DNA of 62,935 bases, counting the filler, from Reticulomyxa filosa (Eukaryota; Protista; Foraminifera): the NCBI GenBank assembly GCA_000512085.1. It is 21 parts of 21 records of this genome, joined end to end, with 100 filler letters (N's around TTAATTAATTAA, not from the genome) between each part and the next. Parts side by side here need not be neighbours in the genome. Positions count along the whole stretch, not along the records: positions 56,939 to 61,782 come from ASPP01012548.1; 20 more parts are not named here. One strand, 5' to 3'. Position numbers and translations under genes: made by a program. Of this stretch, positions 1 to 61,899 are shown piece by piece (position 1 is the stretch's first letter; every line of letters begins with the position of its first letter). The notes under the pieces are model-generated. The model worked only from the letters and a program-made list of their open reading frames with translations, was not told the DNA's origin and ran no database searches.

Positions 1-1919
1 TTTTTTTTTTTTAAACAAATACCAGAATTTCCAAATAACTCCTTCAGAGTATCCGATTTCATTCCATATTTCAATTTCCTATTGAATCCTTTAGAACTAC
101 AATAGGCACCATCACAAGTTTGAGAATTTGCTTGCTGCATCTTATTTTGAATAGCAGACAAAAGTTTTAAAGCTCCTGTTTGCCTCTTTTTAGTTGCAAA
201 ATACGAACTTAGAAAAGCAGAACTTTTTTTATGAGCCTGTGTTGAGTATAGCATTTCTCGATTACGTCTGCAAAGAATATATTCAACCTCACTAATGAGT
301 GAGGGTACTGTACTGTATCTTTATTGGCCGGTTAGCCTTGCCAACGGCTTTCTTGTTAGCACCTCTCCCGATAAAAGATTGTTACAGCGCTTGCCTCAAA
401 ACTTAGAAAGTTTATGCCGACGAAAGCCCAAAAATAAATTGCAACAAGTACGTTGTCATATTGTAATAAAAGTGCTTAAAGCAACACGCTACTCACAATA
501 TTACAAAATCCAATAACTATAAAAAATCTTTATCTTTATATCACTATAAAAAAAATTTTTCACTAGTTGAAATTTCTTCGGATTTTGTATTGCGATTTCT
601 GGTCAGTTTGAAAATTTTCTACTTTCAGGATCTTTCTATATTTTTCGAAATATCTAGTTTGTATTGCTTTGCTTTCTAGATCTTGCTAATCTTTCACGAT
701 GATCGTCGATGATGATTTTTTTTTGCTTCTTTTTCTTGCTAGCTTTTCTTGGTACTTCAAAATTCTTCCCGAAGTTTTTGAAAGATTAACATTTGAAATT
801 TTGCCACAAGAACGTTCAAGATGTATACGATCAATTCTGGAGTGAAACAGGAAGAGCAGGCATACTAGAGATTTGTAAATTAATCCAATCAATTCCAAGT
901 TTTATGTTATGAATCGTGTTGGATTGAAATCAATTGTCCTGCTTGCAAAAAACAATTGTTTATTATAATGGGCAAGATCAAGATGAAAAACCAGTCCCAG
1001 TTTTAACATTTAATCTGTGATCATTTGAAGAAGAAGTTGCTGTCACAATGAATATTTTAGAATATATTGTCATTTGTCTGCCTGGTTGGATACCACTTGT
1101 GGAGAATAGCCTTTACACAGACAAATTGAAAACATTCAGAAGAGGTCAAACTGTTGAATTACAAGATATAAGCAAGAAGCAGCAACACTTAAAAGAAAAC
1201 TTCGTCAAGAAAAACAAAAATACATAATCAAAAGTATTGAATCGTTGAAAGAAGCAAATACGAGGCAGTTTTTCACCAGTTCAAGCAAATGAATTCAACA
1301 AGATCACTGTTATTCCATCAATAATATCTACTAGCTCCAATGATGTGGCCAAAACAGATTCTGAAAAAGCCGTACTATTAGTTGTTTAAACATCTCATCA
1401 ACCACCAAATTATTCAGAAGAAATTTTATATCATTGTGAACTAGTTGCATCAGATAATGAAACGAATAATTATCATTTATTTGATATAACTGAAGAAAAA
1501 ATTATTGAAGCATTTATATTAAATCTCACAAGTACATACAATATTTACGATCAAATACTTAAGCGTATTGGACAATCAATAGTCGAATCTTGGTATTCCT
1601 ATTCAATTGGAGTTTAAGATCCAATAAAAATAACAAATGTTCTTAAATGAATTTCCTGCAAAATTTCAAATATTGATCTACCAAATTAGCTTCAAATCTT
1701 AAAAGCTTGAAGAATCTTGACTTTTCTAACTGAATCCATTAAAAAAAAATATTTTTGCAGTAAATTGAAAATGATAATGAAATTGACTATATATTTTTTT
1801 AAAATAGTAATACGCTCAGTACCACTTTCATGTAATCACTATGCAAACATATCACTTACAACTGATTCAAAACAATATTTTCAATATATATTCTGTGATT
1901 CTGCTGCTATATTCAATTT

Positions 1920-2200
1920 GTGTAAATATATATTCTGATATCATATGCGAACATAACTGAATCAACAATATCATTTATATACAACATGAATAACATCTTA
2001 TGCAATAGTCATTTTGTTACACTAATTTTAAATTCTTTTACTAAATTAATTCCATTTAATATACTTGACCAATTCGATCTTTGATTAAGCTATATAACCA
2101 CCAATACATTTTTCATTTAAGTCTATAAATAATAATATTTAACATTTAATTATAAACAATATTATTTTATGTCATATGTATAATTTTCCTTGTGTTTGAT
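1920..2200 (-). mobile_element. Decayed non-LTR (LINE-type) reverse transcriptase relic
   Basis: Minus strand reads LK*KMYWWLYSLIKDRIGQV../LNGIN..KEFKISVTK*LLHKMLFMLYINDIVDSVMFAYDIRIY. This follows the LINE RT consensus order (W..SFL..R.q.V, GVPQG, LF.lYiND, FADD), with stops and frameshifts. Confidence 0.6.
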
Positions 2201-2751
2201 TTAATAATTATTTATTAATTAACTATTATATCAATATGTTTGTTGTTCTTTATAATTTGTAAATACTATGTATTAGTGCTTTCTATATTTACGATTGTTT
2301 CTTTTAATATAAGTTAGTCAACATTAATTATATAATATCGTATTTCTTATATTATTTAACATAAATATAATAATAATTATATTTATTTAATATTAAATAT
2401 TGTTCTAATACAAAATTTTTTCATAAACTACAACTTGAAAATATAATTTACATATATATAAATAACTTAGTTTTCAATTTAGCTATTTTCAATTTGTAAA
2501 CTTTATAATAAACAGTAATTATCTTTTAATAATTTCGTTATTGCATCTTGTACCCAATTGACAATAATTCGTTATCTTGTCTTATTACCGTTTAAAAAAT
2601 ATAATATTACAAGTTCTTCGAAAAACTTGATATATATCTATCTTGATATAGTAAAAGGACTTTTACTCTTCAAAACAAAATTAAAATATCGTTACTGAGT
2701 TAGTTGATAATTAATTGCCATTGTCTTAATAATTGACTTATTATTGATATT

Positions 2752-4976
2752 TTACAAGTTAGCACGCTTATGATATTGTAAGTGTATTAAATAGATGCAC
2801 GCATGACTTGTTGAATATTATCATTTTTTGCTTTTTCAAAATATTGTTGTCGTTTATTTGCTTCGTCCTATTAAATTTTGTGGAATTGTAACTGTTTAAC
2901 ATTTTTGAAAGAAGAAAAAAACTTACCAATCGAGTTCGGATCTGTTTGTCTCTATTCATAAGTTCAATCATTAAATTTGTCTTCGCTTCAAACATTGTTT
3001 GATTATTCATTCCTTCTTTTGACAATTCATTATCATGGCTTTCTAATGTGTGTTTAATCTTTTCTTGAGTGACATCGAATATCTTCATTTCTTGTTCAAT
3101 ATTTTCGACATCTCTCATTGCGCGGTTCCATTCTCGTTCAAAAATATATTGTTTAGAAAGTAACTGTCCAATGTGTGGACCTATTTTCCGCTTGATATTT
3201 TTATAATTGTCCTTATTTTCATTTACTATTACTTCAATTTCAATATCGTTTTCATGTTTCAAAGGAATAATTGTTTCCTTAGGATTGCTTACTGTTAATA
3301 TCGACCCATCTAGTAATGATTTAAATGATTCTAGCTCTGGGCCACTTCTGATAGTTATTGACGATTCAGGATTTAGTTGAAAGAAGTCATTTAAAATTGG
3401 CTTTATTCGTATGTTTGTTATTGTTTTTGGTTTGTTACAAAATAATCATTTTATTTTTTTTGCTATGTGGTAACTTAACGGGATTGCGTTGAACGAGAAG
3501 CCCGTCGTTGTAAAGAGATTGAACAACAGAAAAATCTCCTCCGAAAACCACTTGAGATACTTCTTGCGCCGTGGACTCGACAGTGCGGCTAAAGAAATCG
3601 AAGTTTAGCCATTGCAATGCTGTTTTTATCGGTTCAGTGGACAAGCCTGAATGTTTATCGTTGTTTTTGCACTGCAAATATTGATCCGTCATTTGTTGTT
3701 GTAATGATTGCCAAAAGTCAGCTCGTGCCCAATCGGATATAACACTTTTACTTTGTCTGTTTCTATACCATTCCACACGTCTGGATTTGATGTCGGACCA
3801 TCCTTTGTCAAAATTGAATGTATCCTTGTCTGTTTGTTTATATTGTGAACGTGATGCATAATGTGAATACATAATTGAAAAAATATATTCAAACCTTGTA
3901 GATACAGTTGCGTCAGTTGTTGAAAACAGCTGTTAATGTCTTGCATATTTGTTCGACAAAACTGAATAATATTGTACATTTGATCACTTGTAAGCTTGAA
4001 CGCACCTTGGTGCTGTTGATTAAATGTATCGACACAGTGCTTCAAATAGTCATTGCTCTCTATCTGTGAAGACAACTGACCGATCCACAGGAAATTGGTC
4101 GCGGTCTTCATTGGACGAGGGCCTTCTGTCGTTAGTGCCAATATACAATGACTCAGTTGATACTTGTAAGTCATATCGTTCACCAATTCCAACATAGGCG
4201 CGTTTTCCAAGTTGTCAAGATTGTCTAGTACCACGATTGGCATTTCTCCTGTTTTTGTTACAGCCATTCTGTTGTTGTTTTGGCTTGCCAAAATACAACA
4301 CTGTTTGTTTTGTAAAGAGATCAAATACTTGACTGTGATGTCATTTCACATTCTAGTATCCTCATTTGGTCGATCCAATGATTGTACAGCCATTGCTCGT
4401 AGGTCAATCCGTTTTGTCCAATCCATTCATGTATTCGTCGTCGATACGTGGTCAGCCATTCTGGTAGTTTCATCGTGTCTTCCATTTGTTTTGCCAAGCT
4501 TTTCTTTTGTTATGTTTGTTATTTGTTTTGTTTTTTGCCAAAGGCCTTTGGGAAAAGCAAAGACATACTTGAGATGCCAAATCAAAACGAAAACAAGGTA
4601 ATTGAAGTTTGTGCAAAGCATAAACAATGGAATGCGTTTTACCAAATCCAGAGGGAGACTCTACCAAAGTGATGGGACATTTGGAATTGTTTTTGTTCAG
4701 GACATTCACAAAAGCTTGGTCAAGGGTCTCACGTTTGAAATGATTCTGTTGTTCTTTCGCTTGCTTCAAGTTTTCCTTTTGTCTTTCGATATCCAATTGA
4801 AGGTTACGCCAGCTTTGATTGTACACTTGGCTTGAATATTTGTGCACGCCAAAAATACCAACCATGCACGATCCACAAATGGTTCCTATCTTGAGAAGGT
4901 TGTTTGATCTTGTTATTAGCATCAATGTGATGCAAAAAAAAAGCATGCAACATACTAGTACTCGCCCGGAAAGCAT
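2752..4976 (-). CDS. Multi-exon P-loop NTPase with N-terminal hydrophobic segments and C-terminal coiled coil
   Basis: Walker A-like LVESPSGFGKT (ORF 4470-4976) and Walker B-like PIVVLDNLD (ORF 3689-4324). GT-AG introns near 4568, 4330, 3894, 3480 and 2925 join ORFs 4470, 3689, 3435 and 2768 in frame. Confidence 0.65.
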
Positions 4977-56838: not shown

Positions 56839-57029
56839 NNNNNNNNNNNNNNNNNNNNNNNNNNNNNNNNNNNNNNNNNNNNTTAATTAATTAANNNNNN
56901 NNNNNNNNNNNNNNNNNNNNNNNNNNNNNNNNNNNNNNGGGGGGGGAGGGGGGAGGAGGAGGATGAACCAAGCAATGCATGACAATGGATAAATGTTTTT
57001 TTTTTGTGGTGAAATAGAAGGAAGCAATT

Positions 57030-57422
57030 TTGTTTCAGGAATGTCGCTACAAAAAAGACAGTTTTAAAAGCCAAGTGCTGATAGCAGGAGTGACGCAAGT
57101 GAAAACATTGGACTCATTGAAAGAATTGAAAAGGGATGGGTTGGCGCAAGAAGCTCAAAAAGATCGCTCCAAAAGCCAATGGGAGAGTCCAACTCCGCCC
57201 AAAGGAAACATCCTGCTGCAGTTCAAAGACAAACTGCAGGTGATTACCAATTCATTCCCCATTGAACAATTTTATGTACAATTGCACCAGTATGTGTTGA
57301 ATATTGAGCCTGATATTGAAGACATGGAGATGCGTGAAGAATTATACCGACAGTTATTTTTATAACAATAATTGCATATAATAATAACAATAATAAATAA
57401 TAATGGTATCAGTGATAATAAC

Positions 57423-57460
<38 letters not shown>

Positions 57461-60400
57461 TAATAATAACAAATAATAATAATTTATAAAATTGTATTGA
57501 TTGGTAAAAAAAAAAAAAAAAAAAGGAAAATATCCCATCGTTTGTTCGAAATTCGTCCCTGCTATTATGATGGAATGCATGTGATGTCATTCAAAAATCA
57601 AACGGAAGCCAAAAAAGAGATAACCTTTGCGGTGGACGGCAACTTGAGGAGCCGTCCGAACAGGGGAGAGGAAGTGACCGAAGTCAAGAAGGACATGGAA
57701 GTAGACAAGCCGAAGGAGTATAAGGTGCGCTTGACGTTTGTGAAAAAGATATCGCTGGATGACGAGAAGACGACAACAGAGGCACCTTCTCCGTCGGTGC
57801 TGCAAGGCTTAGCCATTTTGAACCGCAGCTATGTGAGCAACGCAGGATACAAAAAATTGCATCCGAAATCAGATGTATGGTTCAAAATGACGGAAAAAGA
57901 AAAGACGAGCAGCGGTGGCGATATTCACCAACGTGGTACCGACATGAATGCTCCTGATTTGCGCATGTTGAATGGCTTCCACTGCGCCCCATTCCAGGGA
58001 CGTCCGAAGACTGTGCTGAAAACCATTAAGCAATGCAAAGGTGTAACAAAATACACGGTTCGAGATTTTATCGATAACAATCGAGATTGGGAAGAAAAGA
58101 TCAAAGGACTGACCGCCGTCGTTATGTACAGTACTTATTCATTTCGTATTTATGACTTTGATAAGTCGAAAACAGAAAGGAGCACGTTTATGAAAGATGG
58201 CAAACCCATTTCCTACAGAGAGTATGTCACTCGCTATAAGAAGTTTGATTGCAGAGATGACGAGCCATGTATGGTGGTTGAACGAAAGCGAAAACGAAAA
58301 GGCTTTAAAAATAAAGAAAAAGACAAGGAAAAGAAAATGAAGATGAGTTTGAATATTCTCATTTCTTGCCCTCGACTTTGATGTTGGTCCCCAGAAATGA
58401 AATGCAAACCAATGAAGCACGAGCTCACTTACGTGTACGCAACACTGTCAGTGGAGAAGAGCACATTTATGGTGCTATTGATTTTCATAAAGATGTTGCC
58501 AGTTCTCGAGGCAATAATTCATTCAAGGTTTTGTTTGTTTTTCTTTTCATATCAAGTTTTTGTACCATGTTAGACATGTTTTGTTTTGTTTTGTTTGTGT
58601 TGCTAAAAGGTTAACACTCAACCCCTGCGAACCTATGGTTTCATACTCAATACCCCCTCAATTGCTCTCATTGAAAAATCCGGCAAACAAATCAAAATTC
58701 CATTGGACCAGAACTTTAATGGAGGACAATGGGGGAGAAACATTGGTGCTGTGCTTCCTCCGCCTTCCGTTAATAAAAAGGGCACTGACTTTAAGTCTCT
58801 GACCATAATGATTTTCCATGACAAAAGAAATGAAGACGCGAAAGAACGATTTTTAGATAATTGGGACGTGTTTATGAAACAAAAACGCCAGTTTCGAGTT
58901 CTACCATTTTTGGATCCGACTGTCAAAGAATTTTCGGTTTCCGAATTGGACACGCTGCGAGACAAGATTCGAAATGAGTGTGATATGGCCATTGTGATTA
59001 TTCCATCTACCGAGGAAGGATCTAAAATCAAGGTTGAGATCACTCGACAAGTCATGTTCCGTCAACACTATTCCGGTTTGGAAAAATCGGAAAAATGGGG
59101 AGGTCACGTGAACCCGACCAAGGATGGCACAAATAAAAGCGCTAACATGCTGAACTTGCAGTTTATAACGGACCACAACTGTGCCAACCCTCATAGTGTT
59201 AGTTCGACCATTGAAAGTTTAATTTTTGTTATAACAAATAAACAAATAAACAATGCTATCACTATTCAATTCAAACCAAACAAATACGAACAATTAATAA
59301 TTAAAAAATAATCAATCGAATAGCTTGTATGGCTAAAGCCGGATTTATATTGTACCAAATCGATCCGCAATTGCCATGCAATCGCATGAACAATTTGCAT
59401 AAGGCATGGGTGATTGGTATCACTCTTCGTCGAGAAGCGAATCGGCCAGCAATATTGGTGCTGACATGCATGCACAATGGCTTGGAAGGATCGATGGTAA
59501 GAACTCATTCTCGATGCATAATGTTACCAGCACACAAACATGTCTGTGCTTTTAATATTTTTTATAAACTTTTTTTACAATTGATGACCGATGGAGCAGA
59601 AATGGCCAAACTGTATGGAGAGGAATTACCTGAAAATATTCTTTGTCTGCGATTGTCTGTTCCAGACGGAGCGTTCCAAGAATTACACAGCAAAGAAATA
59701 CGAGCACTCCGATTGGTTTTGAGAGATTGCAAAAATATTTCCAGAGTATGATTTGACATTGTATTTTTATATTGTGCATGCGACCCACTTGATTTCAATT
59801 TTAAAAAAGGGTGTTTTTTTTTTTTTTCTCGTCTTTCTTATTTAAATTAAAAACTCATTTGAATGAATTGGCGTCGGGTTTTATTTTGTTCATTTGCTTG
59901 CGAAATATTCCAATGTCAATAGAATCCATTAATTGGATGAAATAAAAAGGAGAAAAAGAATATACAAATGGATATTTTGATTGTTTATATAAAATGACGT
60001 TTCTCATATAATTTGTGTGTGTGTGATGTATTATAAATCAATAGAAATGGCTCCCAGAATTGTTTTATGCTGTTGTACAAACACAAATCATTGACCGTTT
60101 CTCTGTTCAAAGCTCCTCCGATAGATTGAGTCCGGTGCAAGATCCAATGGTTGTTGTTGACACTGTAACTACGCCCACATTCAATGAATTTATCATATAT
60201 TTGCCGAAAGTTCAAGAACAAAAGAAAATTATTGGCCAGTACCTTCGTTATATTTGCTTGTGTGACGACTGGAAACTCGGCAATAATTTAGTTTCTTTGG
60301 CTAAAGATCCTGCTTGTTTCAGTGACTTGATCCAATTTATATATTCCACCCACTACAGCTATGTCACTGGAGTTCCTTTTATCAAAGGAGCACCCACATT

Positions 60401-60644
60401 GCCAGCAGTGTTGTTGTGGGCCCGACATTTCGCTGATGTTAATATCTTGTGTTTCATTCTTTTTTAATGAAAATGTCACGTAAAAACGTTTCAAAAAAAT
60501 AAAAATTGCTGCTTGGAAAAAACAAAATAATAGTGGGAAAATGGACTACTCATGAAAGAGGACAGAACCTGGTCTAATATACAGGTGGAAGACAATATAA
60601 ACTTAGGTGGTAAACCTTTTTCCTCGGATATCTCCAAGGCATAA
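57030..60644 (+). CDS. Divergent PIWI/Argonaute-family protein (N-L1-PAZ-L2-MID-PIWI), predicted non-slicing
   Basis: N: VITNSF..LHQYVLNIEP, YYDG, YKVRLTFVKKI. PAZ: GLTAVVMYSTYSFRIYDFD..STFMKDGKPISYREY..DEPCMV..HFLPSTL. MID: AIVIIP, LQF, MAKAG. PIWI: WVIGIT, LPENILCLRLSVPDG, VVQTQIIDRF, VVVDTVTTPTFNEF, LPAVLLWARHFA. Introns 57353-57525, 58528-58609, 59217-59323, about 59746-60044, about 60438-60533. Confidence 0.88.
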
Positions 60645-61216
60645 CCTTTTTTAATAAATACATATAACACATCAAAATAAAACAAATTATAAAAAAAAAG
60701 AAACATTCCACACTGTTGCAACGCCTTGCACAAAGCTTGTTCTTTGTTATGGACAAGGTGTTGCTTTGTTATTTTCGTGGTTGTCGTGTCTTTTTTTTAA
60801 TCTTAAGTCTTTATTAAGAAACCGTGTTTTTCCCTTAAACACAAACATTACACTTCACAAATTTTCGAAAAGTGTGTAAAGTGTATCTCCTATCAAGCAA
60901 CATGCAAACTTAAAAATATTAACCGAGACATTTTTACATTAAACTCTCCTTGATATCAAAACAGTTAAGAATATCTGTTTAAACCCTAGCAACATGGTAA
61001 AACACACTTTCAGATCGTATTCATGCTTCATAAACAGCAGAGTCTGGTTCAGCGGTTTTTTTGAAAGTGTCACAGGAAAAAGTTTAAGAGAGGCGTTTTG
61101 AATGTGCTGCCAATAACAAACGTAATAATCGTTATTATTTTGTGAGCATCGTTCGTGATTGCCAGCATTTTTCATTTTCGCAGTGCATTTTAAAAGGCTC
61201 GTTTTTTAAATCAACC

Positions 61217-61745
61217 ATGTCACAACAAACAGTGCCAAGCCAGAACCAAAGCCCAAACCAAGTTCCGGCTACTCTCACACATTCGCAAAGTACGACAAAT
61301 ATTCTGCCAAGAGTTTCAACGGTGAGCGCAGTTCCTACAACTACTTTGCCAGCCATGCCACGCACTATCCCAATCAAAGCAAGATTGATGGGAGGACCAA
61401 ACAAAACAGTGGACATTGAGATGCCAACTGGAATGAAGATCCGCGAGTTGAAGAATTCGATTGTGGTTATGTTCCCTGATCTCACTGTTTCACGCGTTTT
61501 ATTTGGTGGTCGTCCTTTCCAAGATGATGATGCAACATTAGGTACAAATTTTTTTATATAAACGTTGTGTATAATTTTTTTATTCCAAGTGATATTACAT
61601 CTTTTTTTTAAAATAAAAAAAAATAGCTTCCGTTGGAGTTTACAAAGAGTGTACTGTACAAGTCCAAGTCAAAGAATTGGGCAGTACTGACCCCAAACCA
61701 AATCTTCAGCTTTTGCGAGAAGAGATTGAGTTGAGACGTCAAAGG
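61217..61745 (+). CDS. Protein with an N-terminal ubiquitin-like domain (fragment; intron about 61542-61627)
   Basis: IPIKARLMGGPNKTVDIEM..KIRELKNSI..RVLFGGRPFQDDDATL|ASVGVYKECTVQV fits a beta-grasp UBL. Confidence 0.7.
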
Positions 61746-61899
61746 GTTTTTTTGGGGTTCTTTTTTGTTTTTTTTTTTTTTTNNNNNNNNNNNNNNNNNN
61801 NNNNNNNNNNNNNNNNNNNNNNNNNNTTAATTAATTAANNNNNNNNNNNNNNNNNNNNNNNNNNNNNNNNNNNNNNNNNNNNACACACACACACCTTTC

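Follow-up and report, generated by a model that had tools for sequence, protein, structure and literature searches.

Can an Argonaute in which the slicer residues are replaced be a working gene, and if so, what does it do? This question is raised by a locus from the foraminifer Reticulomyxa filosa (GenBank assembly GCA_000512085.1). The window, that is, the whole stretch of DNA analyzed (62,935 nucleotides (nt) in 21 joined parts), contains a piece of record ASPP01012548.1 (positions 56939-61782), which codes for a highly divergent Argonaute on the + strand (57039-60644). Argonautes that do not slice are frequent and well understood, and slicer loss is also found in vertebrate AGO1, AGO3 and AGO4. 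We consider it likely that the R. filosa protein is a non-slicing, PIWI-like foraminiferal Argonaute and a member of a sub-clade which lost both catalytic aspartates long ago.

The Slicer Tetrad

Slicing requires a catalytic tetrad (DEDH or DEDD). In human Ago2 (hAgo2), the residues are D597/E637/D669/H807, and in Siwi they are D670/E708/D740/H874 (PMC7015924). Judged by alignment, all four residues are replaced in the R. filosa protein, which has T-H-L-R, so that each of the four aligned positions departs from what is seen in slicer-competent Argonautes. The first Asp aligns to Thr (WVIGITLRR, codon 59422-59424), the second Asp to Leu (LCLRLSVPDG, 59653-59655) and the tetrad His to Arg (LLWARHFAD, 60423-60425), which is followed by a His. 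The first-pass annotation had located these three residues at exactly these codons. It had left the glutamate finger unplaced, and this position is now assigned to His (AHKHVCAF, 59539-59541). No acidic residue is found at any tetrad position in the sequence alignment, nor among the 17 residues made up of the finger position and its 8 neighbors to either side.

The tetrad was mapped by a family alignment that was bridged to MIWI and hAgo2. The bridge is the family protein P0020 (Pfam Piwi, 89.8 bits), which aligns unambiguously to MIWI (P0020/MIWI pairs: GIDVSH/GIDCYH, RTEII/GQELV, FRDGVSDGQ/YRDGVGDGQ and YAKHFA/YAHKLA). A profile of the clade aligns LR[S] to position 669 of hAgo2 (the PDB entry is the D669A mutant).

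Gene Model and Domain Architecture

The gene model is based on three-frame translation and splice site inspection of the + strand. It confirms a six-exon gene (57039-60644), in agreement with the at least six exons that had been proposed for this region. The exons are located at 57039-57352, 57526-58527, 58610-59216, 59324-59745, 60045-60437 and 60534-60644. All five introns are GT-AG introns (82-299 nt); they start with GTT or GTA and mostly end with A(A/T)AG. Codon phases agree at all exon junctions. The coding frame has no in-frame stop in 938 codons, while the other two frames have 50 and 63 (mean of shuffled sequences: 61). The guanine-cytosine (GC) content is 41.8% in exons versus 21.3% in introns, and 37% for the whole piece; the exon and intron values and the stop counts predate a refinement of the end of exon 2 by 3 nt. 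Intron 1 has a GC content of only 10%, with an (AAT)n microsatellite at 57400-57470 and an A18 run (57507-57524) just before the acceptor. An in-frame intron inside exon 4, at 59497, was considered but rejected, as no acceptor yields a multiple of three; it is also disfavored by the D-to-D spacing of 77 amino acids (aa), which fits the 72 of hAgo2.

The exon lengths sum up to 2849 nt, which is 950 codons minus one nt, because there is a single frame change inside exon 2 (see below). The predicted product of about 950 aa has the full layout of a eukaryotic Argonaute, N-L1-PAZ-L2-MID-PIWI. This domain order had been read by eye and is now backed by a Pfam PAZ assignment, by fold matches of the N/L1/PAZ and MID regions, and by homology of exons 4 and 5 to Piwi-domain proteins. 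Searches were run exon by exon, and trees were built separately on the alignment columns of exons 4 and 5.

Exon 1, which codes for an N-terminal extension and the initial strands of the N domain, matches an N-terminus profile built from six aspartate-less relatives (26.7 bits, E value 5.6e-10; reversed control 0.1 bits), with which it shares the conserved motif W..P...v.vvTNS....l.vHQY.l. Exon 2 completes the N domain and continues through L1 and PAZ into the beginning of L2. Pfam assigns PAZ (PF02170) with 28.8 bits, which equals the gathering cut-off (E value 1.3e-6), and gives a weak match to ArgoN (E value 0.036). The PAZ core (58073-58297, + strand; residues 193-267 of the open reading frame (ORF) from 57497) has the motif Y.tY.fRI.DfD...t..STF..dG..ISY.EY and aligns to the PAZ domains of MIWI and HIWI. 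When compared to PDB sequences with phmmer, exon 2 had 13 significant matches, all of which are PAZ domains of the PIWI clade (PIWIL1, PIWIL2 and Drosophila Piwi; E values for PIWIL1 and PIWIL2 from 9e-5 to 5e-4), and none belongs to the AGO clade. An AlphaFold model of an exon 2 segment (E2a) was built on the corresponding segments of 14 relatives (predicted local distance difference test (pLDDT) 67.7). In a structure search, it aligns over 190-290 columns to eukaryotic Argonautes only, with Drosophila Piwi as best match (6kr6, E value 2.6e-7), followed by hAgo2, Siwi and EfPiwi. The nearest Atlas clusters to exon 2 are all ArgoN/ArgoL1/PAZ. A word-index protein search with exon 2, restricted to proteins of 162-515 aa, had no significant match among 588 candidates; owing to this size limit, the negative result carries little weight.

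Exon 3 codes for L2 and the MID domain. Its AlphaFold model (pLDDT 78.6) has MjAgo as its top Foldseek match (E value 2e-4) and also matches the isolated MID domain of hAgo2 (E value 7e-4, target template modeling (TM) score 0.57, probability 1.0) and full-length hAgo2, MIWI and Siwi. These matches are of moderate strength, and a lumazine synthase appears lower down the list. Exon 3 keeps a Lys (GSKIK) and a Gln (LQF) that are invariant in the family.

Exons 4 and 5 code for the first and second half of the PIWI domain. With phmmer, neither exon 3 nor exon 4 nor exon 5, each used singly, matched any PDB sequence at E values up to 10, and an Atlas feature search with exon 5 gave no usable match. 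Exon 5 has 34 phmmer matches in a library of 1.84 billion representative proteins (best E value 5e-18). Upon a Pfam scan of 32 of these, 24 carry the Piwi domain (PF02171, best E value 1.9e-25) and six carry PAZ. Exon 4 matches family proteins with E values of up to 7e-16. The exons are collinear with full-length proteins of about 1,000 aa that have both PAZ and Piwi, such as the environmental protein P0009 of 1,061 aa (E2a: 174-410; exon 3: 505-664; exon 4: 719-852; exon 5: 870-1006). A profile of the PIWI region of the clade, with the R. filosa exons included, matches KpAGO, hAgo2 and PIWIL2 at about 1e-6. Exon 6 codes for a C-terminal tail (WENGLLMKED...GGKPF...DISKA) that ends with a TAA stop codon and parallels the tails of aspartate-less relatives (W(Q/R)Y..LT..D....L.ID..N.KPK).

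A Foraminiferal Family with an Aspartate-Less Sub-Clade

All relatives with a named source organism are from foraminifera: P0035 and P0036 from Elphidium margaritaceum (MMETSP1385) and P0022 from Bolivina argentea. The first-pass annotation had suggested looking for orthologs in other foraminifera, and relatives are found there. The remaining ones were recovered from metagenomes and metatranscriptomes of marine origin; P0001 and P0002, which are closest, are from a TARA metagenome. The family is split into two groups. Members of the first group keep the aspartates and have D-E/D-D-K, with an invariant His one residue past the canonical His position (YAKH). This group includes P0018, P0020, P0026, P0027, P0032, P0034 and P0040-P0045. 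In the second group (approximately 14-19 proteins, including the Elphidium and Bolivina transcripts), both catalytic aspartates are gone. The tetrad is typically K-D-S/A-E; position 1 may also be R, E or N, and position 3 may be N, C, T or G.

The trees place the R. filosa protein in the aspartate-less group with a support (ultrafast bootstrap/Shimodaira-Hasegawa-like approximate likelihood ratio test) of 99/92 for exon 4 columns and 100/97 for exon 5 columns. P0001, P0002 and P0030 are nearest. The protein shows 26-44% identity per exon to members of this group and carries group traits: a Trp after HFA[D/E] (HYA[EDS] in relatives) and a KP-containing tail. In these trees, nesting within an ordinary catalytic clade was not seen. 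Support values, foraminiferal members and the selection data (see below) agree with the proposed lineage-specific, non-catalytic clade. The proteins P0035/P0036, P0022, P0009, P0037-39 and P0001/P0002 share the architecture of the R. filosa protein and the loss of both aspartates. Within this group, the R. filosa protein is the most divergent member, with T replacing K at position 1 and H replacing D/E at the finger position.

Gene structure adds to this. Introns 3 (59217-59323) and 5 (60438-60533) have the same site and phase as two introns of the TARA locus L001 (1607-1690 and 2681-2772), the gene of the closest relative. The first interrupts a Thr codon (after GAA A), the second is in phase 0 after HFA[E/D]. 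Because the introns of L001 coincide, the junctions of introns 3 and 5 are independently validated. L001 lacks counterparts of introns 2 and 4. Its spliced tail (WESSLITREEK...AKPQF) parallels exon 6. The two "overlapping ORFs" of L001 were found to be one gene with an intron, so that a frameshift in L001 was rejected. Another genomic relative is L006 (metagenome BOEU19-1 scaffold_4379, 1058-4076), which represents P0012 in at least five ORF-sized exons. One of its exon boundaries lies inside the region equivalent to exon 4, and intron positions thus vary among clade members.

Several aspartate-less proteins (P0009, P0035, P0036, P0037, P0038, P0039, P0011, P0012 and P0006) have a variable tail, acidic or of low complexity, which ends with D-V-x-M-[K/R/Q] (alignment columns ~535-548). 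This ending, possibly a short linear interaction motif, is lacking from the R. filosa protein, which ends with DISKA.

An affinity to the PIWI rather than the AGO clade is indicated by sequence comparison, namely by the PAZ matches, for which this had already been suspected from the motif, and by P0020 (E value 4e-13 against MIWI, 3e-4 against hAgo1). The profile of the clade's PIWI domain does not separate PIWI from AGO references. Word searches from P0035 and P0020 returned only six and seven family members, respectively; named references for AGO or PIWI were not among them.

Working Gene or Pseudogene

The aspartate-less sub-clade is under purifying selection. The ratio of nonsynonymous to synonymous substitution rates (dN/dS), determined over the PIWI half and the tail for members from three different samples, was 0.08, 0.13 and 0.35, which is far below the value near 1 expected for pseudogenes. 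The members from Elphidium and Bolivina are represented by full-length transcripts. The closest relative of the R. filosa protein is 40-44% identical, and synonymous sites are saturated. For this reason, constraint on this copy was judged by the retention of conserved sites together with the dN/dS of the clade. Among positions that are at least 80% conserved in the family, the copy keeps 86% in exon 4 and 76% in exon 5, while it matches the consensus at 14-23% of the variable positions. On this basis, we lean towards the view that this particular copy is a working gene.

Several observations weigh against reading it as a functional non-slicing Argonaute. Exon 1 has no in-frame ATG, and the reading frame breaks within exon 2. 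The terminal branches are long (1.4 and 1.69 versus a family median of 0.41, i.e., 3.5-4 fold). The protein deviates at conserved spots (VCA instead of (V/I)(I/V)P after the finger; VTT instead of ITS). The PIWI assignment is transitive, because neither Pfam nor the PDB was matched directly by the PIWI exons: Pfam reported no family for exons 4, 5 and 6 when scanned singly. Finally, the Tyr of the canonical Y-K-Q-K pocket, which binds the 5'-phosphate, could not be confidently placed in the alignments.

Some of these points would also fit a pseudogene, namely a recently disabled paralog of a functional non-slicing Argonaute, which is truncated after PAZ and has a branch lengthened by relaxed constraint. 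The tetrad of this copy is the most degenerate of the clade (His at a finger position that is mostly acidic, and L/R versus S/A and E/D in relatives), and no identical or near-identical protein is present in the library of 1.84 billion proteins. The latter means that the gene has seemingly never been called or annotated. We regard a pseudogene as a possible but less probable explanation. The long branch is countered by site conservation: the frequency at which conserved positions are kept is 4-6 times that at which variable positions are matched, and nearly all of the branch was thus travelled under selection. In addition, the absence of stops from 938 codons, where about 61 would be found by chance, and the preserved GT-AG boundaries and phases of all five introns argue against decay. 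The two structural defects that a pseudogene would explain have other candidate explanations.

The first one is the missing start codon. The exon had been taken to begin at 57030, which is merely the TTG start of the ORF. It most likely opens at 57039, right after a CAG acceptor (57036-57038). This acceptor (tttgtttcag) is a good one, and the contig ends only about 100 nt away, which accounts for the missing start: an upstream exon with the start codon is probably located off the piece. There is an ATG at 57041, which is out of frame with exon 1. It opens a nine-codon frame (57041-57067), one base off, which crosses an A6 run (57051-57056). This ATG would be the start codon if the A6 run was miscounted by 1 nt; otherwise, the start would be beyond the contig edge.

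The second one is the frame break, where the frame must change from frame 2 to frame 1 within 58315-58378 (+ strand), an A-rich region coding for a K/E-rich PAZ loop. The interval is delimited by stop codons: the new frame has its last one at 58312, and the old frame meets its first one at 58379. The gene had been described as intact apart from a probable 1-nt error near 58330. That there is a single break at this place holds; the cause may be a 1-nt indel in the A-runs of this low-complexity loop, but it may also be a short GT-AG intron (58274/58277-58347, 71-74 nt), which would remove the break as well. Upon its removal, the loop reads CMV-FEYSHF-LP and is as short as that of L001 (CLIKFRNNYY-LP), while other relatives have a charged loop of 20 aa at this site. 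Introns at 58222/58243-58316/58322 were rejected as the cause, as they would remove the conserved PAZ segment "E.C.V". Given that the start codon is also absent from the piece, the term "intact" was slightly optimistic.

Proposed Guide Binding without Cleavage

A working non-slicing Argonaute would load a small guide RNA, the 3' end of which would be held by PAZ and the 5' end by the MID-PIWI pocket. The loaded protein would base-pair with its targets without cutting them, and silencing or marking of the targets would result from binding and from the recruitment of partners. The sister group with D-E/D-D-K may supply a cleavage or biogenesis step. We infer guide binding, followed by recruitment instead of cleavage, because the PAZ signature, the invariant Lys and Gln of MID and the pocket Lys of PIWI are kept. 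For the 5'-phosphate pocket, the Gln (LQF) and the Lys of the KxG motif (KAG) align to the Gln and Lys of MIWI via P0020.

It is also conceivable that the protein has left small-RNA biology altogether and uses the Argonaute fold as a scaffold or decoy, devoid of guide binding. PAZ is detected just at the Pfam threshold, the MID match is modest (TM score 0.4-0.57), and the pocket Tyr was not identified. Moreover, canonical Argonautes have a short hydrophobic end, while this protein has an extended C-terminal tail with a conserved motif of its own. However, the MID Lys and Gln and the Lys of KxG are kept not only in this protein but family-wide, the aromatic residues of PAZ and its STF..DG..ISY.EY signature are preserved, and Argonautes known to lack an intact tetrad still bind guides (PMC7015924, PMC3105430). 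We therefore consider a scaffold or decoy unlikely. That the protein is still a nuclease with a rearranged site, in which the His after the canonical position, nearly invariant family-wide including the D-E/D-D-K group and thus suggestive of a role, acts together with an acidic residue (E at 59434 or D at 59665), is highly improbable, as the metal-binding Asp positions hold T and L in this protein, compared with K and S/A in relatives (where the Lys would fill the metal site), as no acidic residue is close to the finger position, and as Siwi loses slicing by H874K alone, just as Drosophila Piwi with its DVDK tetrad does not slice (PMC7015924).

Comparison with Known Non-Slicing Argonautes

If the R. 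filosa protein is a non-slicing Argonaute, as we prefer to read it, it resembles several known systems. Drosophila Piwi acts by guide-directed binding and recruitment (PMC7015924). Both proteins have the full N-PAZ-MID-PIWI architecture and a noncanonical tetrad, and Drosophila Piwi is the best structural match of the N/L1/PAZ model. Its Lys at the fourth tetrad position corresponds to that of the sister D-E/D-D-K group. It keeps, however, both aspartates, whereas the R. filosa protein has lost all four residues. Sequence identity is only about 15-20%, the R. filosa protein has a long C-terminal tail, and a rhizarian protist is compared to the animal germline.

Ptiwi07 and Twi8 from ciliates are PIWI-type Argonautes from protists with mutated catalytic residues (IDQ as the triad of Ptiwi07), as is the R. 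filosa protein. They form a divergent but conserved ortholog pair that exists beside catalytic paralogs; Twi8 is nuclear and binds RNAs of 23-24 nt (PMC3105430). They belong, however, to Alveolata rather than Rhizaria, and Ptiwi07 keeps the middle Asp, which is lost in R. filosa. A direct sequence match to Ptiwi07 or Twi8 was not obtained in the searches of this analysis.

The ciliate pair has been likened to the WAGOs of nematodes (PMC3105430), which the first-pass annotation had also named as an analogy. WAGOs are also lineage-specific Argonautes devoid of slicer residues, and they act by recruiting effectors. They represent a nematode-specific clade, whereas PAZ and the family of the R. filosa protein match PIWI-clade structures best, the named relatives are foraminiferal, and no WAGO sequence was among the matches of any search. 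Based on these comparisons, we argue that the likeness is functional only, and that the R. filosa protein would be an analog rather than a member of the WAGOs.

A Neighboring Gene

A second gene is located downstream on the + strand (61217-61546 and ~61627-61745). Its first exon starts with the ATG at 61217, is rich in Ser, Thr, Gln and Pro, and continues with a segment that looks ubiquitin-like. The frame resumes past an AT-rich intron and is still open where the contig ends. No Pfam family was matched.

Implications for Foraminiferal Small-RNA Biology

Full-text literature searches found no paper that analyzes foraminiferal Argonautes or their catalytic residues. The foraminiferal family and its split into an aspartate-keeping and an aspartate-less group seem to be undescribed. 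Similar genes have probably been missed in annotation, because the PIWI half on its own is invisible to Pfam.

A more far-reaching proposal, which we put forward with considerable doubt, is that foraminifera have a conserved two-part PIWI-like system. It would consist of the D-E/D-D-K(+H) group and of a blunted K-D-S-E group with D-V-x-M-K, the latter being nuclear, chromatin-directed effectors, comparable to Drosophila Piwi or to Twi8/Ptiwi07 of ciliates. Among blunted members, the R. filosa gene would then be the first one known from genomic sequence with introns. In the foraminifer Allogromia, PIWI is reported to be up-regulated when the nucleus undergoes "Zerfall" (bioRxiv 10.64898/2026.10.21.760831). 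It is tempting to speculate that the blunted proteins are involved in the nuclear and genome dynamics of foraminifera, e.g., in genome elimination at Zerfall. This link is speculative, because it rests on the Allogromia report only.

Small-RNA pathways in Rhizaria, and in foraminifera especially, are almost undescribed. Foraminifera keep a presumably non-slicing Argonaute clade under purifying selection beside a group that retains the aspartates. To the independent losses of the slicer known from Piwi, Twi8/Ptiwi07, the WAGOs and AGO1/3/4, this clade adds a further one. It also offers specific candidate proteins for silencing that is guided but does not involve cleavage, in a lineage whose nuclear cycles are striking and whose genomes are rich in repeats.

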